Part shown: in pieces, positions 1-17,595 of the stretch | Layout: the number at the start of each line of letters is the position of its first letter | Position numbering within the stretch: the first letter of the stretch is position 1 | NCBI GenBank assembly: GCA_038496445.1 | Contig: JALMLS010000199.1 | Location: forward strand, 1 to 64,000 | Source: Trichosphaerium sp. ATCC 40318 | Taxonomy: Eukaryota > Protista > Tubulinea | DNA length: 64,000 bases | Direction: 5' to 3' | Position numbers and translations under genes: made by a program | The notes under the pieces: model-generated | The model's database searches: none | Told to the model about the DNA's origin: nothing | Seen by the model: the letters and a program-made list of their open reading frames with translations, nothing else

Positions 1-549
1 ACGGACTTCCACAGTACACTGAGGTGTCTCCCTGGGCAAGTAAAAACTAGAACTCAACGATTAGGTGTTTCCATTTTTGAAAACCTCTCAGTCCGTTTTC
101 GCAACTAAGGGTAATACATACATACTACGACGCGAAGGTAAACTTGCTGGTGGGTAATATATGCTCCTTGGCTTTCGTGGCTTGAATTCCGCTTTACTTT
201 CCGAAAATTCTCTGAATGCCAAACTAAGTCGCCCGCTTTAATTCTTGTTAGCCTACACCTCACTAGATCTCACCACATGTCCACCATCAATGTTTACCCT
301 TCTAAAACAAAGCGCGCGCTAGAGTTAAAACAATTTGGTAAGCTATAACGGTAAAATATAGTGAAATTCGTCTTGTTATACCAAAACAACGTTATTTAAC
401 CGATTTTTTTTGCTTTTTGTATTTTCTCTTGAATTATTTTATAAACTGGCCAAATCGACTAAAAAGTATTACCAAACTCTTTCCCACGCGAAAAAACCAT
501 ATATTCGACGTATTACGAGTTTTGGCGCAAAAATACTTGTAAAATCCGC

Positions 550-1121
550 AGAATTATTCCGCCGTCTCTTACATGCCCTAGAACAGCATAAAACACCATT
601 AAATATACTATCATTGCCTTTTGAGATCCAAATAGCCATCTGCGAGCAAGATCAGGAAGTTTTTTCAAAATTCCACGTGCTTTCTAGAAAAGCAGCTACA
701 AATACTCATTATACAAGTAATTTAAAAAAAGAGGAACTTGGATTATTTGGAGACCTACAGGAGAGATTTTTGAAAAAACTGAGTTTTCTAAAGGAAAACG
801 TGAAGGAAAGAGTAAATTTTGGCGTCGTTCTGGTTTGCTTCTAAAAGAATGTTATACCAAAGATGAACTTGATGGTATTTATCAGACTTATGATTATACT
901 GGTAATATCGAGGAACAATGTTTTTATAAGAGAGTAAATTAGATGGTGAACACAAGGCATGGAGGAATGGTGTCTTGAAGAAAAAAAGTTTTTATAAAGA
1001 AGGTAAACAACTTGGATTTAAAGGATGGAGAAATGATGGTGAAGTACTTGGTGGTGCTTGTGAGAGTGGTCGACAAACTGCTAAAGGTTTTAGATCTGTA
1101 GCAGAGCTATGTGCTATGTAG
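550..1121 (+). pseudogene. F-box-like + MORN-variant (YwqK-like) repeat gene, frameshifted
   Basis: ORF 410..844 contains ILSLPFEIQIAIC...LSRKAATNTHY, paralogous to the N-termini at 18.6 kb and 47.5 kb. After an A7 run (~725-731) another frame reads RGTWIIWRPTGEIFEKTEFSKGKREGKSKFWRRSGLL..., and after a second shift (~930) KLDGEHKAWRNGVLKKKSFYKEGKQLG...* (TAG 1119-1121). 5' end not resolved. Confidence 0.7.
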
Positions 1122-1391
1122 TATTTTTTTTTACAAAACAACAAATAAAAAAAAAAAAAATAGCATAAAACGAGAAAGTTTTTTTTTTACTCGCCTGTTA
1201 TCAGGATATGTATTTCGCAAAATGTTCTTCTATTCATGCCTCAAAATACTATATGAATTGTATCACGTTGGTATGTTTGTATAGAGTAAAACCAGTCAAG
1301 GAGTTAGCGTTGATTGTTCTTTTTTTTATTCGAAGATTTGGGAGAAATCGCTATCTTTTTGTTAAATTCTGTACATGATTATTTATTGTTT

Positions 1392-2986
1392 TTAATACAT
1401 TGGTGATCCCATTGGAACAGCTTGAGGACCAGGTTGGTTTACACTGACATTGATTTCATGTCCTTTCTGTGAACCAGCACCGCGGCAAAAATAAACGCCC
1501 ATAATGGTAGCTAGAACACCTATGATCACCAAGAGTATTGTAATGACGATAAGAGCGATTGCCCATGATGCCAAACCACTTGGTGGAGCGCCTACAGCAG
1601 CTGCTATTGTCGTTGGTTCAAGAGTAGGAGCATCTGTTGGTGGTAGTGTCGTTTCCAGAGGGTCTACAGGTGGCTCTGTTGTTGGAGGTAGTGTTGTTGG
1701 TGGATTTGTTGTAGGTGGAGTTGTCGTTGGAGGTTGTGTTGTAGGAGGTAGAGTAGGAGGCGGAAGCAATGATGAGATAGAGACACCAGCAAGTAAGGAT
1801 TCGTCTGAAGCGAATGAAACATGCATAAATCCAACAATGTTAGATGTATCAGCAGCGATAACGAGATCGTCTGTTATTCTTGTTCCAGTAAAAAGATCAA
1901 CGTCATCTGTTATTTCAAGTGTACTACAAGAAAAGAATGAGAAAAGAAAGGAATAAAAAGAAACCAAAAGAAAGGATAGTCGTACGTTTCATCTAGTTTT
2001 GCGAACTTGTATTGTTTTTCAGTTCCTAATTGGTCGTATGCAAGTACGTATACACCTTCGAATACCGAGAATGTACCAAATGGAGTATCTGTCAAGATAC
2101 TAGAGTCCAATAGCTGTACCTCTGATCCAGCGATACCAGCTCCGTCGACTTTACGAGCAGCAATTGGATTTCCTTTCCAAAGAACGAGAAACTCTTCTTT
2201 TGTTCCATGAGATATCACATTGGGTCTGGTTCCTGCTCCGAAACTTACTTCAAAGTCATTTATCCTTCCACTGTCGATGATGTGACTTCCTTGTATATTA
2301 TCTGCTTTCGTTTGCCAAACAGCAAAGAAACTTTTGGTAAATGTGTTGTAAGCTATTCTTGATCGCACTTGCCATTCGATATCATTGAAAATAGATACTC
2401 TGAATTGAGGAGATACATCACCAGTTACAGGGTCAACTGATGCTCCGAATATAGCGTATTCTTTTTCTCTGAGTACGATATCTTGAGTGGCCCATATTAC
2501 CATGTATTTGTTTGTATCACTATTGAAGGCGGCACTTGGTTTTGCGTTTTGGCTACTTGTTGATGATTGACTTATTGGAAATGTTGGTTTGATAATTAAC
2601 CCGTTTTGATCAAGAAGGATTCCTCTTACTCTTGTGGTTTGGCTTCCTCGCGATCTGAAGTAGTACAAGTACGATCCTGTACCAGTACCGACAATATCTG
2701 GAGATATTGGTACGTCCGCACCCAAAGAGAGAAAGAAAACATCAGTCAAAGCAGTGCCGTTTGGATCGTAGAATCTCGCTCTGAATAGATTGAATGTTCC
2801 TGAAGAGTCTCGTCCAGTTATTTTCCATGTTACCAAGTATCTGTTGGTGACTGCATCGAAAGCTACACCTTTTTCTTTGACCTCATTGAATCCAACTGGA
2901 TCTATCACGTTGAATTGCCTCACAGTTCCGAAAGATAGTACAGAAGGAAGAAGGCAGAGAAACAAGATGTACAGTAAAAGTGTCAT
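1392..2986 (-). CDS. Type I membrane protein: signal peptide, beta-propeller-like repeats, Pro/Thr stalk, TM helix, short tail (copy A, intact)
   Basis: Exon 1 2986-1986, GT-AG intron 1985-1924, exon 2 1923-1392. Hydrophobic N-terminus MTLLLYILFLCLLPSVLS; repeats of type PxxAFNxxxxxYxVxW; PPTT repeats; TM WAIALIVITILLVIIGVLATIMGVYF. Confidence 0.85.
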
Positions 2987-3509
2987 TAAACTACTAACTT
3001 TAGATTAGAATGATTATACGTTATTAGATCTATGGCTTACGTTGTTGTGTTCATTGTGTTGGGGATTATTAATTGTTCTCTCAAACTTTATGAAGCTTGT
3101 GAACTATTCTCTAAATTTATCCGGATCACGTGAACTTGTTTTGGAGAATGGAAGAATAAGGAGAATATTGGATCGTCATATCTCGCTTTCAAAAATACTG
3201 TAAAAACAGCTAGTTAACTACAAAGCAATAATAAGCTGCGGGTTTTGAGTTTTCCCGTCTCACAAATTGTGTTAAGTGGCGTTGTACGCTCGCTCCACAC
3301 TCGAAGTTTAAACGCCAGTATTCGCTTCAGTACCTAACATTTGCTTTGGGTACGCCATGTTTTCACGAAAACCCACGTGATTTTGTACTTATTAAAGTTC
3401 ACACAATTTTTTCACGAAGCACCACGAGATACCTTTTCTTGGTAAGGAAGGATATGTTGCCTGTTTGACGTTTCATACAAGTTTTATTGTGTTATTTCTA
3501 TTATACATT

Positions 3510-5011
3510 CTAGTTGTAGTACGGACGAGGTGGTATTGCTTCAAGAGGTGTTCCTACAGGAACACTCTGATGTGACGGTCCTTGAGGTTCTCCTTGAGGT
3601 ATTCCTTGGTGTACGTTGACGTTAACCTCAGTTCCTTTGTCTCCACCACAACGGAAATAAGCACCAGCAATCATTGCTAAAACAACAAGAATAAAAACTA
3701 ATACAGCTACTACGATAATAGCGATTGCCCATGATGCCAAACCACTCGGTGGAGCGTCTACAGCTTCTGCTATTGTTGTTGGTTCAAGAGTAGGAGCCTC
3801 TGTTGATGGTAGTGTCGTGGGAGGTTGAGTTGTAGGTGCTTCAGGTGTTGGCGGAATAGTAGTCGGAGGTTGAGTGCTCGGTGAAGGAATAAATGGATCA
3901 ATAGATACGCCAGCGAGTGCTGATTCAGTTTGAGCGAATGAAACAGGCATAAATCCAACAATGTTAGATGTATCAGCAGCGATAACGAGATCGTCTGTTA
4001 TTCTTGTTCCAGTAAAAATACTAACATCATCTATTGTTTCAAGTGTACTACAAGAAAGAGTAAGAAAAAGATTAAAATAAAGCCATACGTTTCATTTACT
4101 GTTGTAAACTTATAGTGTCTTTCGCCATTGTGTTGTTCATATGCAAGCACATATACGCCTTCGAATACAACGAATGCACTAAATGGAGTATCTGTCGAGA
4201 TGCTAGAATCCAATACCTGTACCTCTTCCTTTCCAAAGAACAAGAAACTCTTGTTTTGTTCCGTGAGATATCACATTGAGTCTGGTTCCTGCTCCTACGC
4301 TTACTTCAAAATCCTTTATCCTTCTGCTTTCTATGATATGACTTCCTTGTATATTGTCTGCTTTCGTTTGCCAAACAGCAAAGAACTTTTTGGTGAATGT
4401 GTTGTAAGCTATTCTTGCGATTCAATATCATTGAAAACAGAAACTCTGAATTGAGGAGGTACATCGCCAGTTACAGGGTCAACTGATGCTCCAAATATAC
4501 CAAAATCCCTATCATTACCAACGACTTCTTTAGAAGCACACACTACCATATATTTATTTGTATCGCTGTTGAAGGCAGCACTTGGGTTTGCGTTCTCGCT
4601 TTCATCAGAAGATTGACTTATTGGAAAAATACGAGCTGGACTATGTACTCCGTTTTCATCAAGTAGCATTCCACTTACTTATTGAATCAAATATTTGTGT
4701 TCTGAAGTAGTACATATAAGATCCTGATCCAGTACCAATAATATCAGGTGTTACGTTGTCTATCTTGCAAGAGAGGAAAGTCTTCAGTCACAGCAGTTCC
4801 ATTTATCTTGCTGCAGAAAATGTAAATGCTATACTGTTAGACTCTGTTCCAGAGACTTCATATGTTACCAAGTATCTCTCAGTAACAGCATCGTAAGCTA
4901 TTCCCTGCTCAACGTTATCAAAGTCAAGTGGATCTATAACATTGAATTGTCTGACATCTCCAACAGATAGTACAGAAGGAAGAAGGCAGAGATGTACAGT
5001 AAAAGGGTCAT
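3510..5011 (-). pseudogene. Degenerate copy B of the beta-propeller/PT-stalk receptor
   Basis: ATG at 5011 with signal-peptide homology but a 7-nt deletion relative to A. ~45-nt deletion near 4230 and further indels split it into ORFs 4409..4669, 4031..4243 and 3510..3950. Confidence 0.8.
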
Positions 5012-5193
5012 TGTGTTGAAGAGGATATGTACAATTGTTTTAAGTGTTACGTACGTTGTTGTGGTCATTGTAGGTGTTTATGTAAATGCATTAAGTTGCT
5101 AACGACAAAAAGTTTTTTTTCAAAAAAAAAACAATGCTAAGCATCGAGTACCGATATAAAACAGATGTCACTACGGGACAACTAAAATGCAGC

Positions 5194-5411
5194 AAAAAAA
5201 TGCGAATTTTCGACTTTGTGAGTGCTGTGTCTACTTTAATTAGTAAGATAGCTCTGCCACGCTGTATAGCGTTAGGAATGATTTCAGGTCTCATGAATAT
5301 TCGGTTCACGTGAAATCAATGATTTACTTTTCGCGAGCGTGTTGTCATACCCCACGTGTTTAACATGGTACCAGTACTAATTGTCGTGTACGACTGCCAT
5401 ACAGTGGCGTG
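5194..5411. repeat. Left non-coding inverted-repeat arm (partner 8689-8903)
   Basis: 5275-5373 is the reverse complement of 8721-8818 with about one mismatch and one indel. Flanks align with lower identity. Confidence 0.95.
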
Positions 5412-5720
5412 TTTACGGTAGTGTTTAACGTTGTTCCACGTTTACGACTACATCCGCCATAGAAGTTACAAACGCTTTTCAATTTCAAAATGTAGGCCTT
5501 TTAATCATGTGTAAACAAGGAACAATTTGGTTAATACTTCTCAATGAAAGGCTGCTCCTGTGGAGCGCAAAAACTGTATTTGATCACTGCTAGGCAGCGT
5601 AACACCATTGAGTTCGTTGATGGTTCGTGACGCTTGTCCAAAGAATGGCAGCCATCTGGGTTTTTTTAAAATTGTATGTTGGTATTGTGATCTGATTTCT
5701 GGCTTTAATCACGTTTTGAA

Positions 5721-6418
5721 TCATGAAGAAGGAGTCTCTTGTAACTTCAGTAATCCGTTCTTATCAAGACGATAAACAAGCCATGCTTTTGTTCTTGTGA
5801 TACCGAGATCAGTCCAAAATTTCTGTTGTTGTTCGTCCGTCTTCTCTACTTCAAGTTTAAGCCTAGAGAATGTGTCAAAGCGATAAAAAAAGCGACATTA
5901 AGCGTTTCAACAGTATTAGCACCTCTTGCAGTCCTTTTTACAAGCAATATCTGCTACATGCTTCATCAGCGCAGTAAGTACTCCTTTATCGTTGTCGCTA
6001 GCGTATATTTCCTCTAGCTGTAGTTCTTTTCCTTCCCAAGTTGAATACCTTTCTTGTGGTTATTAATTTGTTAAGTCGCTAGTTTAGAACCTGAAGTAGT
6101 ATAAAGCCAAACCTAGTGTTAGTTAGCGTTTTTGGGAATGACATTTTATAAATGAACGTGCCAACCGGTTTCGCCTCTATAAATGCTATTGCTACATGAA
6201 CACAATCCCCAAGATCTCGTTTAATAGCTTTAAGAAGTGTCAGTGGATGTTAGTGTATTTTTTCATACAATCAACCGTTAGATTCGTTTCACGCTCTCTA
6301 ACACCCAAGTAAGCCTAAAGGCCGTTATTTTAGTTTGTTTATGTGTTGAAACCTTCAACAGATCGAAAATAGTCCCAGCATCGTCTTTGGTAGCGTCTCT
6401 GACGAGACACAGCGCCAT
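5721..6418 (-). CDS. Diamine/thialysine N-acetyltransferase (SAT1/SAT2-like GNAT)
   Basis: Spliced translation MALCLVRDATKDDAGTIFDLLK...GLALYYFRYSTWEGKELQLEEIY...ALMKHVADIACKKDCKR...WLVYRLDKNGLLKL. YSTWEG is typical of the SSAT family. Confidence 0.8.
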
Positions 6419-6633
6419 GGTAACTCGTACAAACAGACGAAAGCCAAAATCCCAACTTAAGAACTTGTGCTAAGTTTTGCAATCAATCAAGAGCAACCCT
6501 ATGTTTTGATTCTCCGTTATCATTATCATTATGATGTTCGTACTGAAGGTTTTTTATCGCACGTGTTGACCACAGCGGAACAATTTTGAAAACTGGAAAC
6601 GAATTCGTGAGCAGACTCAACGTTTAAAGCAAG

Positions 6634-7332
6634 ATGAGTACAGAAAAAACGTTTGTTAAGGTAACAAAGAATGAATTGGTTCTCTTAGAGATAAATAAGC
6701 TTGTTAGCGATCCAAAGGCTGGTAAGTGAAGCTACAGACCCACAATTGCTTATTTTGGCGGAAAGGTGGCGTGTCATCGTTTTGTGGCGTCACAAGAAAT
6801 CATCACAACGGTAAAAAAGTGCTTAAACTAGAGTACGAAGCATACGTACCCATGGCCGAGAAGGAAATGATGAAAATATGTAAACAAATTCGGTACGCAA
6901 TAAAAACAAGCTAGTCGCGTATGCATACGCGCAAAAACTAGTTTAAAGCTATTTACTAACTTATTTGACTCCAGCGAAAAGTGGTCTGTTATTGGCGTAG
7001 CTATGTACCATCGAATAGGACAAGTAGATATTGAACAAGCGTCTGTACGCCTTTCGATCGCTTTGCGATTGTAATCAACTTTTCCTCATCAACAAAATAG
7101 GTAATAGTAGCAGTTTCATCTGTACACCGTAAAGAATGTATAGAGGCTATGCATTATGGTATAGATGAGTTAAAAAAGTGCGCAGATATAGCTAAAATCT
7201 ACTGTTTGTTTTTCGCTAATGGTGACAACCTACAGGTACGTTCCAGTGTGGAAAAAAGAGTATTATGAGGATGGTTCGGTATGGAAACAAAACCAAGAAG
7301 CAAAAGACGGACATCACCATTGCTGTAGCTAA
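6634..7332 (+). CDS. MOCS2: Molybdopterin synthase catalytic subunit (MoaE/MOCS2B)
   Basis: Spliced motifs GGVSSFCGVTRN, LEYEAYVPMA, HRIGQV, VAVSSVHRKE, IDELK, VPVWKKEYYEDG; four GT-AG introns. Confidence 0.92.
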
Positions 7333-7485
7333 CACAGAGACAACTTGTTTTGTTGTTGAAAAAAAATGCTTGTTAATAATATTCGGTATGGAAACAAAAC
7401 CAAGAAGCAAAAGACGGACATCACCATTGCTGTAGCTAACACAGAGACAACTTGTTTTGTTGTTGAATGCTTGTTAATAATATTC
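7275..7485. repeat. Tandem duplication (period ~107 bp) of the MOCS2B 3' end and UTR
   Basis: ttcggtatggaaacaaaacc...gttgttgaa(a)tgcttgttaataata occurs at 7275 and 7382, differing only in an A-run. Confidence 0.9.
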
Positions 7486-7729
7486 AACTCAAATTTAATC
7501 AACAGACACGTGATCGCACAGTGCATGGACAGCAAAGTAGTAGGAAGGATGAAACTTTTTTTTTACTGAACTTGTTGTGGAGAAACAATTCTCTCGAGAA
7601 ATTTTTTTGTTTTTTTTTTTTTTTTTCGGTTTGTGTTGTTACTGTGTCTTTTTAATCTGCATGCATACCTTTGTAAATACATAAAACAATTAGTTTAACA
7701 TGTTGTTATTAAAACTAAGTGATCTCTGT

Positions 7730-8530
7730 TTAACCAGTTGTTGGTGTCTTGATGTAAACGTGGTTTGCTTTTTCCCACTTGGTTTTTGACTTCCAAGGTT
7801 GTACTTTGTCCATCATTGGTATCAATTCCATTTCGTTCTTTGCTAGCTCGATGTAATTCTCCATTTGTATACCTATTAAGCGTATTAGAAGCGAGTTATG
7901 TATTTTTTTGTTTTTGTTACAAAGCAAACGTTTTTGAACAAAAAATTGTGCGGAGAGCGTAAGTGACGCTACAGTTAGAAGTTTGAGCGTATTATTTACC
8001 TTCTCCGAACACTTTTTCTATCTCAAAAACATCTTGTGTCTTTTCCATAACGCTGATACGCCATTTGTATACTTTTTCGAGCTGTGCTCTGTATGGCGAG
8101 CCCTAATACGGTTTTTGTTTGTATTTTAATTATTTTGATTTTATTGCTACCTCTTCCATGTTAGAGTCTCTTAACATAACAAGTGCTTTGCGGTAAAGCT
8201 TCATTAGGATTTCTCTTGCAAACGGCTCTACTTCGATACCAACTAATCCAGTTGTACGCTTATATCCCTCTATTTCATAATTAGCAAACGATTAGACAAA
8301 TGGCGCGTGCTTGGCTCTTCGTATGTATAATTTTGCTCAATAACGTTATTTGGTGAGCGGTATTTCATGTCTGTTACTTCTACGGCATTTTCACTAGCAA
8401 TGTCTGGAACATCTGTTTTTCGCCTCACGCTTCTTCTTATTGCTTGTTTATGATTGTATTTCCTGCTGTATGCTACATTACTGCGTGTGGAGCTCGCTAG
8501 AGATGATTTAGCCCAAAGCCGTAGTGCCAT
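7730..8530 (-). CDS. NDUFA5: NADH dehydrogenase 1 alpha subcomplex subunit 5, with long mitochondrial presequence
   Basis: Spliced KRTTGLVGIEVEPFAREILMKLYRKAL...SPYRAQLE...IEKVFGEGIQMENYIELAKNEMELIPMMDKVQPW. R/S-rich N-terminus. Confidence 0.88.
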
Positions 8531-8688
8531 TGTGTAATCTTTTTTTTTAAAAGGAAACTTAACGATAGATCATTAAGTGACTCCATTGCCTATGAACACG
8601 TTTTGGGTTCTATATCCTACTTCAACCAACTAGTTTAACGATAAGTAGCTTCTTTTGGTTTTGCACGTGAAACACCGTAGTGTCTGAC

Positions 8689-8903
8689 CACGCCATTGTA
8701 TGGCTGTTGTACGCAGGAAATGGTACCATGTTAAGCACGTGGGTATGACAACACGCTCGCGAAAAGTAAATCATTGATTTCACGTGAACCGAATATTCAT
8801 GAGACCTGAAATCATTCCTTAATGTTATACAACGTGGCAGAACTATTATCTACCTAATTAAAGTAGACACAGCACCTCACAAAGCGGAAAATTCGCATTT
8901 TTT
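8689..8903. repeat. Right non-coding inverted-repeat arm (partner 5194-5411)
   Basis: Reverse complement of 5194-5411; near-perfect core 8721-8818. Confidence 0.95.
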
Positions 8904-9071
8904 TCGTGGTGATTTAGATTGTCCCGTTTGTTGAAACACGCTGAAATAAAAAAAAACTATTTTACCTGATTCAGATTTCTTTAAGGCCTTGTGTTACTTT
9001 GATAACAAACGAAAACGCGCTAAAATATGTTGTTATGAAGTAATTGGATGTATCTAGAAAATTGTTGTTGA

Positions 9072-10546
9072 CAATTCAACGTGGAACATGCTATTGAAGC
9101 CGATGAGGTCAAAGATATTGGTATGGCTTTTGACGCTATCAAGAATAGATACTTTGTATCATTAGATGTACCAGAATCACCCAACTTGTTCAGAGGAGGA
9201 TTCTACGATCCAAATGGGACTTCTTTGCAAGACGTGTTGTTTGATTTGGAAAAATTTATACCAGTATCTCCAGATATTGTTGGTACTGGCACTGGTTTAT
9301 ATTTATACTACTTCATATCATTCTTAAGTGAAGATGGTACAAAAGTAAGAGCAACCATACTAGACACCACAGCAGGCTTCCTTAGGATCAACCCAGTTTT
9401 TTCAATAAGTGCTTCGAGCGGCCTAGAAAACCCAAGTGCCGCCTTCAATAGTGATACAAACAAATATATGGTGGTATGGGTTAATAGAGATATCGGCGCT
9501 ATATTCGGAGCATCAGTTGATGCTGTAACTGGTGATGTATCTCCTCAATTCAGAGTATCTATTTTCAATGATATCGAATCGCAAGTGAGACCAAGAATAG
9601 CTTACAATACAGTCACCAGAAATTTCTTTGTTGTTTGGCAGACGACACAAGGCAATATACAAGGAACTCATATCACTGATAGTGGAAGGATAAACGATGT
9701 TGAAATAGGGTTTGGAGCAGGCACTGTACCCAATGTGATATCTCATGGAACAGAAGAAGAGTTTCTTGTTCTTTGGAAAGGAAATCCAATCGCTGCTAGA
9801 AAAGTCAATGGCTTTGGGTTCGCTGGACCAAAGGTGGAGCTAGTGGATTCTAGTATCTCAACAGGCACCCCATTTGGTACATTCTCAGCTTCCGAGGATG
9901 TATACGTACTTGCATATGAACAACGCAATGGCGAAAGACAGTATAAGTTCGAAAAACTAAATGAAACGTATGCCATTATTTTAATCTCTTTTTCTTATTC
10001 TTTTCTTGTAGTACACTTGAAACAATAGATGATGTTGATCTTTTTACTGGAACAAGAACAACAGGCGATATCGTAATTGCTGCTGACACAACTGATATCG
10101 TTGGGCTTATGCCTGTATCATTTACACAAGGAGAAACCTTACTCGGCGGTGTTTCTATAAGCACCCTGCCACCTACAACTCAACCTCCAACAACACTACC
10201 ACCAACAACTCCACCAACAACCGAACCACCTACAACTCAATCTCCCACAACACTACCACCAATAGAGGCTCCCACTCTTGAACCAACAACAATAGCAGAA
10301 GCTGTAGACGCTCCACCAAGTGGTTTGGCATCATGGGCAATCGCTATTATCGTAGTAGCTGTATTATTAGTTTTTATTCTTGTTGTTTTAGCAATGATTG
10401 CTGGTGCTTATTTTCGTCGTGGTAGAGATAAAGGAACTGAGGTTAACGTCAACGTAAACCAAGGAGAACCTCATGGACCGTCACATCAGAGTGTTCCTGT
10501 AGGAACACCTCTTGAACCTGTACCACCTCTTCCGTACTACAACTAA
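9072..10546 (+). pseudogene. Copy C of the beta-propeller/PT-stalk receptor; 5'-truncated (no signal peptide, in-frame TGA) but otherwise open
   Basis: Homology starts at TGA-CAA-TTC-AAC (~9069), where A/D have AGG-CAA-TTC-AAC; upstream sequence is unrelated to the signal peptide. The remainder is open with the conserved intron, stalk, TM and PPLPYYN tail. Confidence 0.7.
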
Positions 10547-10942
10547 GAATAAAAGCCTGTATATATTATTGATTCATGTGTTTTATTCAAGTCTTGTAAG
10601 AACCGCTTTATGACGTAATCTAAGATTGCGTGGTTGTTCGGGACAGAGTCGATTTTGGATTCCCAAATAATTTACCGAGGCGAACTACCTTCAATAGGCG
10701 TACTATCGTATTCGCTTTATATTAAAAGGTGGCTCACACTCCGTTGTGTACGTGAGATATGACGATTCTCTTTATTCTTCCATTCTCCAAAACAAGTTCA
10801 CGTGATCATATAAATTAAAGGAATAGCTCACAAGCTTCATAAAGTTTGAGAGAACAATTAATAATCCCAACACAATGAACACAACAACGTAAGCCATTGA
10901 TCTAATAACGTATAATCATTCTAATCTAAAGTTAGTAGTTTA

Positions 10943-12600
10943 ATGACACTTTTACTGTACATCTCGTTTCTCTGCCTTCTTCCTTCTGTAATATCTTTCG
11001 GAACTGTGAGGCAATTCAACGTGATAGATCCAGTTGGATTCAATGAGGTCAAAGAAAAAGGTGTAGCTTTCGATGCAGTCACCAACAGATACTTGGTAAC
11101 ATGGAAAATAACTGGACGAGACTCTTCAGGAACATTCAATCTATTCAGAGCAAGATTCTACGATCCAAACGGCACTGCTTTGACTGATGTTTTCTTTTTT
11201 CCTTTGGGCAGTGAGGTGCCAATATCTCCAGATATTGTCGGTACTGGTACAGGATCGTACTTGTACTACTTCAGATCGCGAGGAAGCCAAACCACAAGAG
11301 TAAGAGGAATCCTTCTTGATCAAAACGGGTTAATTATCAAACCAACATTTCCAATAAGTCAATCATCAACAAGTAGCCAAAACGCAAAACCAAGTGCCGC
11401 CTTCAACAGTGATACAAACAAATATATGGTAATATGGGCCACTCAAGATATCGTACTCAGACAAAGAGAATACGCTATATTTGGAGCATCAGTTGACCCT
11501 GTAACTGGTGATGTATCTCCTCAATTCAGAGTATCTATTTTTAATGATATCGAATGGCAAGTGCGATCAAGAATAGCTTACAACACATTTACCAAAAGTT
11601 TCTTTGCTGTTTGGCAAACGAAAGCAGACAATATACAAGGAAGTCATATCATCGACAGTGGAAGAGTAAATGACTTTGAAGTAAGTTTCGGAGCAGGAAC
11701 CAGACCCAATGTGATATCTCATGGAACAAAAGAGGAGTTTCTTGTTCTTTGGAAAGGAAATCCGATCGCTGCTCGTAAAGTCGACGGAGCTGGTATCGCT
11801 GGATCAGAGGTACAGCTATTGGACCCTAGTATCTTGACAGACACTCCATTTGGTACATTCTCGGTGTTCGAAGGTGCATACGTACTTGCATACGACCAAT
11901 TAGGAACTGAAAAACAATACAAGTTCGCAAAACTAGATGAAACGTACGACTATCCTTTCTTTTAGTATCTTTTTATTCCTTTCGTTTCTTATTCTTTTCT
12001 TGTAGTACACTTGAAATAACAGATGATGTTGATCTTTTTACTGGAACAAGAATAACAGACGATCTCGTTATAGCTGCTGATACATCTAACATTGTTGGAT
12101 TTATGCATGTTTCATTCGCTTCAGATGAATCCTTACTTGCTGGTGTCTCTATCTCATCATTGCTTCCGCCGCCTACTCTACCTCCTACAACACAACCTCC
12201 AACGACAACTCCACCTACAACAAACCCACCAACAACACTACCTCCAACAACAGAGCCACCTGTTGAACCTTTGGCAACAACACTACCACCAACAGATGCT
12301 CCTACTCTTGAACCAAATACGATAGCGGCAGCTCTAGCTCCTCCACCAAGTGGTTTGGAATCATGGGCAATCGCTATTATCGTCATTGTAGTACTTGTTG
12401 TTATTGCAGGTATTCTGGCAATCATTTTGGGCGCCTACTTTTGTCGCCGTGGTGGTACAATAGAGAAAGGACATGAAATCAATGTCAGTGTAAATCAACC
12501 TAATCCTCAACCCGTACCTCAACCCGTACCTCAAGTATCAACTCATCAAGCTGTTCCAATGGGATTACCTCTTCATCCACAATACAAGCAAACTGTATAA
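10943..12600 (+). CDS. Beta-propeller/PT-stalk type I membrane protein (copy D, intact)
   Basis: Exon 1 10943-11943, intron 11944-12005, exon 2 12006-12600. Ectodomain nearly identical to copy A; TM and tail diverged. Confidence 0.87.
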
Positions 12601-12658
12601 AAAAAATTTTCTGTTCAATAAAACTGTTTCTATCTTCCACCTTTATTAAAAGTTTATG

Positions 12659-15600
12659 TCAAAGGTATATAGCTATACGCTGATATATTGTCTGAACTAA
12701 GCCACGAATGAACATATCATCAGTTTCGTTTTCTTTGTCAAGAAAAATCTTCAGCTAAAAAGGCAAGAGTGTAAGCACAAAGGTAGTGCGAGTCAAAACA
12801 CTGAAAAAAATTTTAAAATTCAAAGATTTCACAAAAAGTTTTTTTGCCTTGTGATGGCCGATACGTGGTTAAAAGTTGAATGATAATTATGTCAATTACC
12901 TTTGGTAATGCTTCCGACCATTCTTCTCGGTCATACTTTAATTCAACATGAGCCATCAGTACCAAACCAAAAAGTTGTAAACTAGCTTCCTTTACTCTGA
13001 AAATCCATTCAAAATCATGAGGTCTGAACCCTTCACCATCAAAGTAATCTGTATTACTATTTAGGTCGTTTTCATAACTTATACTACATACCAGATGAAT
13101 CATTGTTCATATCAAGTGCAATTTCTTTAATCTTTGACAAGAGAGATTCATCAAGAGTTTTATCTATTTTAGACATTAACTGTTTTTCGTCAGAAACTCA
13201 GCTTACTGTAACTTGCTGCCACTCTTGAAATTATTAACACCAATTGTAAAATATGATGTTTTGAACTACTTGGATCATCTAATAAACCAACCAGCTTTGG
13301 TAATTGTGGACCAAGCGCCTCACCAACTGAAGAATAAAATTAAAGGAATTAGCGCAAAACAAACCTCACCTTCTTTTGCTAAAGATAAGTTGGAGAGTAC
13401 GAAGATGCTGTCATTTTTCATTTCAGTGGTGCCTAAATAACAGCTAAATAAGAAGAAATCCACTGTCAAGAAAACGATGGTTACCTGAGATGGCCATAGT
13501 CACAATCAAAGAAACAAGTTCTGCTCTCTAAGAAAAAACTAAGAAAAAAATCACGTGCTTAAAATTTTCTATAGTCCTAACCTGTAACACGTGTACTCTT
13601 AGATCAGGTATATGATCACAATAGTTTCCCACACAATGAAGCAAATGACATCTAGGAGAGCTGAAACCCTCGTCTTCTTCTTCTTTCTCCTTCTTTACAT
13701 CAATCTTTAATAATTCTTTAAAAATAATTTCTCTTAATTCATCATCATGCAGCCAATAAGCATCTGTCTTATCTCCACCACCTAGACCAAATATTTAGTA
13801 AGAACATACAAAAAGTGTGAACATGTGACTAAAGGTCAGAGCTCAAATGCGAAAGAAAAAACATAGGCGAAGCGTTTTGAAGTGAATTGCAATTGCAGCT
13901 GTTTTAGCGAACTGAGGTTGTATCAACATTTACTACTTACTATATCCAGCGTTGTCTAGTATAACACATAGTTTTTTATATAACTTAGGCTCAACTCCAT
14001 CAATATTAGGAAGTAATGCAATTATTCCTGTCCATCCTTTTCTCTTATCAATAATTTTAGTACACTCAGCTAGAAATTGAGTGGTAAGTATCAAGCACAT
14101 ACTCTCTTTGATGTACGTACTATAACCGCAAATACTACCCATCAATGATGCACCTGATTCCAGATAGGCGTGATCAAGTGGCAAAGCAACAAAGTCACAA
14201 ATAATACCGATGAGTTTAATAGAGATTTGCTTATGTAATTGATTACTTTCCATTGTATCATCATGTTCAAGCCTTCGCAGAGTAGTACCAACGATCACAA
14301 CACAGTCGATTAGGAATGTATCATTCCCGTTTTGCATTTCTACGATAGCGCTTATCTTTCCACGACCTGGAAACAAAGGCGTGAGGAAAACCTTCGGCAC
14401 GTGATATCAAGATAATTTCCAAATTCAATTAAAACAATACTTAGAGGACGATTGCACAAGTATTCATAGAAATGTAGGTTTTTAACAAAAGACACAAGTA
14501 TGAGCTTTGATAATGTTTGTGCACGAAAAAAGATAAAATGAAATGAGAAGAAAGACAAAGAGTTGTACCTGTGTACTTGGGCATTTCGATCCTCATTTTA
14601 TCAACTATTGAAAACAATAAATCTTTATCATTTGACAGATCACAGTAAGTTAAAATACGGGCAGCACTGCAACGAAGGTGAGGTTTGTCTAGCCAAATTT
14701 TAACACATTTCATAATTCTCTTCGTTCTCATCTTTTCAGCCATCTCTAGATACTCCTCTCCCTCCAACGCTTTACACAAATGTACATAAGCATAAACACA
14801 GTTTTAAGAAAAAAAGAAGAATAGAATTGTTCCACTGAAATGCTGAACAATGAACGTACGTTGAAGCTGCCCGAAAATATACCTTATAGCTTCAACTATT
14901 CCTTCTTCAGCTTCAAGATTCTCTTTCCAATCTTCAACTCTATCAAGTAACTTATCAAGTAAACCAACAGCGTGAGCACGCCTAGCTACATTCTTTGTAA
15001 CCTCAGAATCTTCTTCACCACAAATAAAAGTCGCAAGCGCCTGAAATGAAATGATGGTTAAGAAACGTAGAGAGTCTTTCGGTATACACATACATAAGCC
15101 AATATTGTACTTGCTACTTCTATGGCAGAAGAAAATACACCAAAGTAACCGATAGGATCCTTACTGCCGTCTTTAGATAAATCAGCCAAACAGTTCAAAA
15201 CGAAAATTACTTCTTCAACACGATCGGCGCGTATACATAAATCAATACAGCTTGTGTATGTATCCATTAGCTCAGGGTGTTTAGTGCCATACATAACAGC
15301 TATATCCTCATCCTGTGTAAGAAAACCTGTCAGCAAAAGGAATAGGTGTAGTGCTAAGCCCAGAACTAAAGAGATACTTTGCTAACAACAGAAACTTGTT
15401 GCACACCACTGGGGCTTTCGAGAAATGTATAAACGTACAATAGCAAGTTTTAGATTTGGGTCATAAAAGCCAGTAGCTTGTGCATCCTCAAAAAAGAGTT
15501 AATTGGTTGCCATTAAAGGTGAAGTACTCTCTCTTTGTTTGACCTTAGCCAATCACGTGTACAACTTAAAAAGATTCGTGCATAACAAAAATGACAACTT

Positions 15601-16082
15601 TGTCACGTGACGAATCAGGAGAAATTTTTTTAGACGAATTCGTACCTCGTAGAGCTCTGCAAACATGACACGTTCCTTTTTGACACGGTCAACATACATT
15701 TTGAACCAATCTCTTAAAACTTGTCAAAATCAATTATTAGCGTTTATATTACCTTGGTTGTGCGTCTTGGAACTGTATAGCTAGTTCTAATTCGTTTAAA
15801 TACCATTTTCGCGCGTACAATCGGCGGTAAAAATGAACGTTGGTGGCAAGGCAGATATCAGCGAATCTAAGGCCATATGAGGTTTGTTTTAGGGTTAAAG
15901 TACCTTTTACAAGTAATAATAATATTTGTAAAGTCAGCAAGCGCTGTTATTTCTGAGAATACGTTTACAAGAAGCTCGTTAGGTATATCGTCAAATGAGA
16001 GCGTCAAAGATTCTTGTAATACAGAATCAGGTATAGCACGTTTTGCAGCACTGCTATCTTCGGTAGAGCTAAGCGCACTCAT
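12659..16082 (-). CDS. F-box protein with ARM/HEAT-like helical repeats
   Basis: N-terminal SFDDIPNELLVNVFSEI...IIITCKR (F-box), then DWFKMY and multi-exon helical repeats (VIFVLNCLADLS, SIFVLSNLS, ASLQLFGLVLM). Confidence 0.7.
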
Positions 16083-16190
16083 GAAGCCTCTTATAACCGA
16101 CGTTTTCTTTAAACTTAAGACAGTTGACTTCAAGTTCTGCCAGTTTTTTGTTTCAAATTTCCTCTACTTGCAGTACAAGGCTTCAATTTA

Positions 16191-17595
16191 ATGCTTAACT
16201 CTATTTCTCGCGTTCACCGTTGTTCTACTGCTACTGTAAATAGACGAAGAAGTGCTAGAACTATTAAAGTTCAAAAGAGATTTAATAGCACGGAAAATGG
16301 TTCCATTGGTGGTAAAAACGCGTTAGTTACTGGTTCTACATCTGGCATAGGTAGTTCAACTTTGTTTTGTTTAAATGACATTTTGTAGGCCTTGGTATCG
16401 CTAAAGAACTCGCTAAAAACGGTATAACAGACGTCAAACAAATAACGTTTAACAGCTTTTAATCAAAAGGATGTAATATCGTTTTAAACGGCTTTGGTGA
16501 TATCAATGATATCAATAAGATTGTCAGCGATATTAAAGAATCACACGGAGTGAAGGTGTCATACTCAGCCGCTGACTTGTCAAAAGTACGCCAGAGATAG
16601 TCCAGCCACTCTTAAGCATGTCAATGTAGCCTGACATGATCACTGATATGATGAAAGAAGCTAAAGATAACCTTGGTGGCATTGACATTCTTGTGCGTCT
16701 TTTCACCAGAAAACATGGACAAACTGTTCGTTTCGGTATCACCGCATTTGCTTCTCTACGATTTTAATTGAACATGCATAGGTAAACAATGGAGGGATAC
16801 AACATGTTTCTCCTATTGAGAGCTTTCCAGGGAACATGTGGGAGAAGGTTTGTCAACAACAATAAAAAAAAGAAAATAAAAACTGTTGTATCTTACTCTT
16901 CGCTTGTAGGTCATTAGCATAAATTTGAGTGCTGTATTCTACGCCACAAAAGCTGCAATACCACATATGAAGTACGAGAAATAACTTTGTAATTTTACAG
17001 CTACCCACGTGGTAGCTTTTTACTTTTTTTTTGGTTTTCCTGACATTACTGTTAGGGAGAAAGGATGGGGTCGTATCATCAACACTGCTTCTGTACATGG
17101 TCTTGTTGCATCTGCAAATAAGGTATGTGCTAAAATTATATTATTCTTCTTCCTAACAGATTGCAATAAGTCTGCTTATACTGCAGCAAAACATGGCGTT
17201 GTTGGTATGACTAAAGTTGTAGGCTTGGAGCTTGCAGGATCGGGTATGAGTGTCTGTGTACTTCTACTTTTTATTGTGATGTAGGTGTTACAGCTAATTG
17301 TATCAATCCTGGTTGGGTTCATACTGAGTTGGTTGAAAAACAAATAAGAGCGAAAGCAAGTGAACAAGGTAACAATCTTTCGCTTGCAAGTGGCTTGGTT
17401 TTTTCTTAAGCTTTGTATTCTATAGGTATACCTTATGAAGCGGCTGTTGAACAATTGCTTGGAGAGAAACAACCTTCAAAGCAGTTTGTTACAGTCGAGC
17501 AAATAGGACAGACAGCTGTGTTTTTATGCAGTCCTGCAGCTAATCAAATGACTGGTACTTGTCTTACAGTAGATGGAGGATGGACGGCAAACTAG
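16191..17595 (+). CDS. 3-hydroxybutyrate dehydrogenase (bacterial-type SDR) with mitochondrial presequence
   Basis: ALVTGSTSGIG, VLNGFGD, NNGGIQHVSPIESFP, WGRIINTASVHGLVASANKSAYTAAKHG, LLGEKQPSKQFVT, TVDGGWTAN. Confidence 0.9.

Follow-up and report, generated by a model that had tools for sequence, protein, structure and literature searches.

Inverted duplications have been described at human Xq28 (FLNA-EMD) and in the palindromes of the sex chromosomes, where arms that are >99% identical and much longer than those considered here undergo arm-to-arm conversion, and where non-allelic homologous recombination (NAHR) gives rise to neutral inversion polymorphism. Silent-cassette antigenic variation is known from the VSG genes of trypanosomes, vlsE of Borrelia and pilE/pilS of Neisseria. 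An inverted duplication containing four copies (A, B, C and D) of a gene for a putative surface protein was identified in the amoeba Trichosphaerium sp. ATCC 40318, in a stretch of 64,000 nucleotides (nt) that is referred to here as the window and forms the start of contig JALMLS010000199.1 (C217) in an assembly of 70 Mb and 642 contigs (37% GC). Sparse open reading frames (ORFs) and short introns give the window a eukaryotic character. The closest layout described so far is the flip/flop region of Saccharomyces chromosome XIV, in which a unique segment lies between the arms of a 4-kb inverted repeat made up of two gene pairs, and recurrent inversion is driven by homogenisation (Salzberg et al. 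2022, PMC9731477). The arms of the yeast region are kept almost identical by continual homogenisation, and both orientations have been documented in many strains and species (PMC9731477).

The amoeba locus is probably an old inverted segmental duplication with patchwork gene conversion and without programmed diversification. The four genes are arranged in the order <A <B, a unique spacer of 3.4 kb, C> D>, and span positions 1392-12600. A repeat search of the window returned the core inverted arms of the A/D pair at 1470-3063 and 10866-12459 (1594 nt, 95% identity), together with weaker B/C and cross-pair matches that tie all four copies together. The full arms, which run from about 1414 to 5360 and from about 8735 to 12518 in inverted orientation, enclose the spacer. 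The gene order and the mirror partners (A with D, B with C) that had been proposed in an initial annotation of this DNA are borne out by the repeat search and the ORFs, and the upstream region that A and D were said to share is homologous from about 3190 and 10749 inward.

The last 16.7 kb of a second contig, C67 (255928-272662), correspond to window positions 1-16833 at about 99.4% identity, in the same order and orientation, and were left unmerged. The differences between C217 and C67 comprise substitutions clustered at 67-139, 1248-1356, 8348-8832 and 14378-14505, indels and one 107-nt repeat unit. Divergence is 7% in 1248-1356, 3% in 8348-8832 and zero in 1357-7381, and gene A is identical on both contigs. 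Because the differences are clustered, the two contigs represent two haplotypes rather than noise. The patchiness of the differences suggests haplotypes with tracts of lost heterozygosity. No donor for the allelic cluster of 13 substitutions at 1248-1356 was found in the genome. That the inverted duplication was created by the assembler is extremely improbable. The position of the locus at two contig ends that were not merged, and a third small contig that maps to it as well, would fit such an origin, but the complete structure occurs on both C217 and C67 and is therefore not an assembler-made duplication. The two contigs were built independently and show this structure with allelic differences in the flanks and spacer, and the arms themselves differ by 5% (A/D) and 20-40% (B/C), with unlike 3' ends and gene states.

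On C217 both outer genes, A and D, are intact. The proteins encoded by their exon 1 differ at 11 of 334 residues (97% identity), in agreement with the nearly identical ectodomain noted initially. The synonymous divergence (dS) of exon 1 is 0.082 and the nonsynonymous divergence (dN) is 0.016; the resulting dN/dS of 0.2 indicates that A and D have both been under purifying selection since their last common sequence. The two genes differ strongly in the transmembrane halves and tails. The A protein terminates in '...CRGAGSQKGHEINVSVNQPGPQAVPMGSPMY', whereas the tail of D is longer (33 and 54 residues follow the transmembrane segment in A and D, respectively). Of the 30 substitutions by which A and D differ in exon 1, nine are clustered within 21 nt (2711-2731 and 11198-11218), in a predicted propeller loop (residues 86-91, LS..AD versus FP..SE), and none of them matches B or C. 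On C67, gene D carries two frame-breaking deletions of 1 nt (11538) and 2 nt (12027-12028), which may be real or consensus errors.

The inner genes are in a different state. Exon 1 of B contains at least six frame-breaking indels (7, 10, 2, 2, 10 and 47 nt) as well as stop codons, as expected from the frameshifted copy described earlier, whereas the exon-2 ORF (3510-3950) is still open. On these grounds B is a dead pseudogene. The earlier description of C as defective holds for the signal peptide, to which C has no homologous sequence; everything upstream of 'QFNV' is gone, including the start codon. The TGA at 9069-9071, which had been taken for an in-frame stop, immediately precedes the first homologous codon (QFNV...) and lies at the 5' edge of the homology, not inside the body, which is open over 296 + 177 codons with intact splice signals. 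Compared with A and D, C has a dS of about 0.55 and a dN/dS of about 0.4. This copy may be either recently disabled or used via an unseen 5' exon. Two scans of a metagenome and transcriptome contig collection for transcripts of A, C and D were blank, which is weak evidence of silence.

Divergence between the mirror partners is mosaic (Table 1). A single duplication without later events predicts similar and even neutral divergence for A-D and B-C; the observed pattern is uneven, and both main contrasts (A-D and B-C) are significant (Fisher p ~1e-15). The perfect 79-nt repeat shared by B and C directly abuts a segment with 25% divergence. Coding constraint cannot explain the mosaic, because the most diverged part of A-D is coding and the most similar part of B-C is non-coding. 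A 72-nt tract of B is identical to A; across this tract C differs at 13 sites and D at only one, and A/D-type sequence has therefore been placed into B, the donor of which was probably A itself. At the 60-odd differences between A and D, the states of B and C alternate between A-like and D-like without forming tracts, and nothing at these sites points to transfer from a defective into an intact copy. A further short tract upstream of C varies between the haplotypes, C67 having B-arm bases at 8823, 8825 and 8832 and the C217 variant being unique in the genome. A short B-to-C conversion that still segregates between the haplotypes would look like this. Judged by the mosaic divergence, the 72-nt A/B tract and the haplotype-variable tract, non-allelic gene conversion among the copies is well supported, and the arm-to-arm conversion proposed initially is retained.

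The initial annotation went further and suggested that the locus diversifies a cell-surface receptor or adhesin, with B and C as silent donors that rewrite the expressed genes A and D in the manner of VSG, vlsE or pilS. This is very improbable, and nothing indicates programmed diversification of a surface protein. Defective paralogs do adjoin intact ones, and short conversion tracts occur among the copies; a perfect A/C run of 57 nt could also be an exchange, although its significance is marginal and it lies in the most conserved segment of the protein. However, in the one clear exchange between an intact and a defective copy, A/D-type sequence has passed into B, and no donor-derived segments from B or C were found among the A-D differences in the intact genes. 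Neither diversifying selection nor hypervariability is apparent between A and D, given their dN/dS; only the small cluster at residues 86-91 is unexplained. The A genes of the two haplotypes do not differ, and exon 1 of B, with its 47-nt and 10-nt deletions, is badly decayed for a donor. The archive of many silent donors is also missing. A genome-wide search for more copies, which had been recommended, found about eight family loci, with just two defective copies at this locus and two fragments elsewhere (C326 and C29).

The small contig C625 (5674 nt) bears on a second proposal, the flip-flop of the spacer. It consists of the reverse complement of window positions 5760..1553 joined in register to 12388..13845, and passes from the spacer edge through B and the promoter, exon 1, intron and stalk of A into the tail of D and 1.3 kb of the right flank. 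All diagnostic sites are of the A type up to the switch and of the D type beyond it; the hybrid gene remains open and intact. This junction is exactly one of the two expected from an A/D crossover that inverts the B-spacer-C segment. It is conceivable, though on balance doubtful, that B-spacer-C occurs in both orientations in the sequenced culture, flipping by A-D crossover, with C625 as the minority isomer. The in-register homologous join is unlike random ligation chimeras, and the right part of C625 agrees with the C217 haplotype at six of six discriminating sites. Its private differences number one in 4.2 kb on the left and five in 1.46 kb on the right, where C67 and C217 also differ. A nearly identical layout in Saccharomyces, with a gene-pair inverted repeat of 4 kb and a unique segment, does flip (PMC9731477). 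On the other hand, the switch falls inside the 12-nt interval in which A-D identity collapses, where a read-overlap alignment would stop, whereas a crossover could fall anywhere along about 1.6 kb. The reciprocal junction was searched for among the assembly contigs and was not found, the left flank and the D-type exon 1 being present only on C217 and C67, two long contigs that have the same orientation. C625 is one of the smallest contigs, and the neighbouring C626 resembles a read artefact. Arms with 95-97% identity and a dS of 0.08 are also unlike continually homogenised repeats. The proposed flip-flop is thus represented by one contig with the predicted junction, which could equally be an assembly chimera.

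If the inversion is real, it would yield nearly the same pair of proteins with the tails swapped, and its effect would be close to neutral. It is unlikely that the locus is an active amoeba flip/flop region, with C625 as a real minority isomer, in which inversion acts as a recombinational switch of receptor output wiring. Were this the case, each inversion would re-pair the promoter and the nearly identical ectodomain with the alternative transmembrane half and tail, and ligand specificity would be unchanged. A missed-adapter PacBio read was considered as the origin of C625 and rejected, as such a read would continue as its own reverse complement and not into the tail of D and the right flank. 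The contig C626 (1-5552) consists of a single sequence of about 1.8 kb that runs forward, reverse and forward again in a zig-zag and occurs nowhere else in the assembly (positions 15-1842 are the reverse complement of 2059-3888, and positions 222-1893 that of 3883-5552, with 100% identity in each case). Its appearance is that of an artefact from a missed-adapter or hairpin read, or of a small palindromic element.

The inverted segmental duplication with patchwork conversion remains the preferred explanation. A tandem pair of paralogous genes would have been duplicated in inverted orientation, with the arms enclosing three housekeeping genes. Purifying selection keeps the outer genes A and D functional, and the inner genes B and C are decaying. 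Occasional short non-allelic conversion would have occurred between the mirror partners (A-D and B-C) and between tandem neighbours (A into B), and at least one conversion tract would still segregate between the two assembled haplotypes. The same homology could permit an occasional, nearly neutral inversion of B-spacer-C by A/D crossover. Some observations weigh against this explanation. Conversion is deduced from sequence patterns only, and the substitution cluster at 2711-2731, which has no donor among the copies examined, is not explained by it. The open body of C (470 codons without a start) could mean that this copy is used through an unseen 5' exon, and C625 may mean that the locus is more dynamic than the word occasional implies.

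Table 1. Positions in the window of the gene copies, repeats, divergence segments, exchange tracts and spacer genes.
Feature	Position	Strand	Description	Basis
Gene A	1392..3054	-	intact	ORFs, sequence
Gene B	3510..5068	-	pseudogene	ORFs, indels
Gene C	9072..10546	+	5'-truncated, body open	ORFs, homology
Gene D	10875..12600	+	intact on C217	ORFs, sequence
Perfect 79-nt inverted repeat, left copy	5274..5352	.	upstream of B, two CACGTG boxes	
Perfect 79-nt inverted repeat, right copy	8741..8819	.	upstream of C	
Unique spacer	5361..8734	.		
A-D, promoter, introns and exons	3190 to 1554		substitutions 1.5-7.9%	
A-D, last 162 nt	1553-1392		substitutions 22.8% plus 39-nt indel	
B-C, upstream repeat			6.7%, 79 perfect nt included	
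B-C, next segment upstream	5239-5070		25%	
B-C, exon 1			18-39%	
B-C, 3' half of last exon			7.8%	
A-type tract, source	1823..1894	-	72 nt identical to B 3947-4018	
A-type tract, recipient in B	3947..4018	-	identical to A 1823-1894	
Haplotype-variable tract	8819..8832	.	four differences in 14 nt, upstream of C	
C625 switch interval in A	1541..1553	.	A-D divergence climbs from ~4% to 23% here	
C625 switch interval in D	12376..12388	.	counterpart of the interval in A	
A, proposed first exon	3041-3054	-	14 nt, 'MNTTT', then short 5' intron	by analogy only
A, main exon	ends 1985	-	signal peptide and predicted propeller	
A, phase-2 intron	1925-1984	-	60 nt, position agrees with C129 and C19 paralogs	
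A, last exon	1392-1924	-	final beta unit, Pro/Thr stalk, transmembrane segment, short tail	
GNAT/SAT-like gene	~5724-6469	-	unconfirmed candidate	
MoaE/MOCS2B gene	6634 to ~7268	+		Pfam E 4e-14
NDUFA5-like gene	~7733-8530	-		weak Pfam match, E 0.045 on one exon piece
107-nt tandem repeat	7247-7498		3' of the MoaE gene; two and a bit units, 89%	

The genes share a plan of a long exon, a phase-2 intron of about 60 nt after '...DET' (GTACGA...TTGTAG) and a last exon. The same intron is present in two transcript-supported paralogs on contigs C129 and C19, which also have a tiny first exon encoding 'MNTTTT' or 'MTST'. The genes A, B and D have an upstream ATGAACACAACAAC followed directly by GTAAG that matches this tiny exon and, by analogy, may be the first mini-exon. 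The family loci comprise A-D, intact genes on C129, C19 and C3, and fragments on C326, C29 and perhaps C66. In a marine-protist transcriptome record (JGI 3300016894), two transcripts are 100% identical to paralogs in the genome over the exons.

Sequence searches and fold predictions were carried out with single exons or with the natural full-length paralog P0001. Exon 1 of A was modelled by AlphaFold2 (AF2) as an all-beta propeller (predicted local distance difference test score, pLDDT, 72.5; predicted template-modelling score, pTM, 0.76). Five or six motifs resembling 'A-x-N-x3-N-x-Y-L-V-V-W' are visible in exon 1, and the blades are about 50 residues long. The best match in the PDB is the propeller domain of CylK (7RON; VIA-align Z 24.9 over 290 residues, root-mean-square deviation 3.1), at an identity of only 14%, and no function can therefore be transferred. 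Foldseek and VIA-align returned 6- and 7-bladed propellers (Z 20-25), including, after CylK, bacterial lectins, sialidases and integrin alpha heads, and the ESM Atlas returned unnamed bacterial secreted proteins (template-modelling score 0.78-0.82). The model of P0001 begins with a signal helix, followed by a beta domain that extends to about residue 399 and takes its final strands from the start of the last exon; a disordered Pro/Thr stalk, a transmembrane helix (467-493) and a disordered tail complete it. These models indicate that the family members are type-I membrane glycoproteins that carry a propeller as their ectodomain; that this ectodomain binds a ligand or glycan is only a guess from the predicted fold.

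A profile built from six paralogs matched 5438 cluster representatives at E <= 1e-3, with E-values down to 1e-84. Besides the two transcripts of the organism itself, the top matches are long proteins from bacteria in which as many as 15 stretches are matched; these contain a repeat of about 48 residues ('..P.VAYN...N.YLVVW.D.R....DIYGQR') and are named, if at all, only 'hypothetical'. The only full-length relatives in this search are the C129 and C19 paralogs. Neither Pfam nor NCBIfam yielded a family for the ectodomain or for the related bacterial proteins, and a PDB sequence search gave nothing significant. A word-based protein search with exon 1 of A found no match; the method also missed paralogs of 45% identity, and the result therefore excludes only near-identical A/D proteins in the collection. 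The amoeba proteins have the repeat motif and the predicted fold in common with the bacterial 'YLVVW' proteins, but differ from them in having a single propeller, introns and a eukaryotic type-I membrane scaffold (signal peptide, mucin-like stalk, transmembrane segment and cytoplasmic tail). The best non-self relatives of the propeller are bacterial, which raises the possibility of horizontal transfer into the amoeba, and this uncharacterised family may be of bacterial origin. This small family, a side observation of the analysis, is more original than the locus itself, and its propeller ectodomain is hardly seen outside unannotated bacterial proteins. A gene with three Cys-rich repeats of about 130 residues and Pro/Thr stalk-like linkers is located beside the C129 paralog (L016:6034-7212) and encodes a putative secreted or surface protein.

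Three genes (SAT, MOCS2B and NDUFA5) had been assigned to the spacer. The MoaE/MOCS2B assignment is confirmed by Pfam, and that of NDUFA5 is supported only weakly; the exon pieces of the SAT acetyltransferase candidate gave zero Pfam matches and this gene is unconfirmed. The C67 allele of the 107-nt tandem repeat is about 100 nt (roughly one unit) shorter. The right copy of the 79-nt repeat is located between the NDUFA5-like gene and the divergently oriented C, and is possibly a shared promoter element. The flanking ORFs are of ordinary appearance, and no recombinase was noticed among them. A third, partial and decayed copy of the locus is present at C326:5685-7870. It contains the left part of the spacer (7498-7204 and 6477-5195; about 93% identity) and continues into the upstream region and the 5' half of B (82-93%), with the MoaE region deleted.

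The locus is best classed as a member of a kind that is already known, an inverted segmental duplication in which gene conversion is patchy and inversion by NAHR is possible, and it opens no new mechanism of surface variation. In this amoeba, which has been little studied, it offers a clean and small case of an inverted duplication with concerted evolution of a patchwork type, with tracts visible between haplotypes, and a directly testable candidate for inversion polymorphism. As in the VSG, vlsE and pilS systems, intact surface-protein genes have defective paralogs close by, and there are short conversion tracts; unlike these systems, the amoeba locus has no archive and no donor mosaics in the intact genes, which are under purifying selection, and its tract runs from an intact to a defective copy. 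The inverted duplications at Xq28 and in the sex-chromosome palindromes similarly flank a unique spacer and undergo arm-to-arm conversion, whereas homogenisation in the amoeba is patchy and older. No arm pair of the amoeba is >99% identical: A and D are 95-97% identical (exon-1 dS 0.08), and exon 1 of B and C is 60-80% identical. The likeness to the yeast flip/flop region lies in the paralogous gene pairs, which in both cases make up an inverted repeat of about 4 kb on either side of a unique segment with ordinary genes, in the conversion between arms and in the proposed inversion by crossover. In contrast to the yeast region, the A/D arms of the amoeba fall short of near-identity and the B/C arms are far less similar, two of the four amoeba genes are defective, and a single small contig represents the second orientation.

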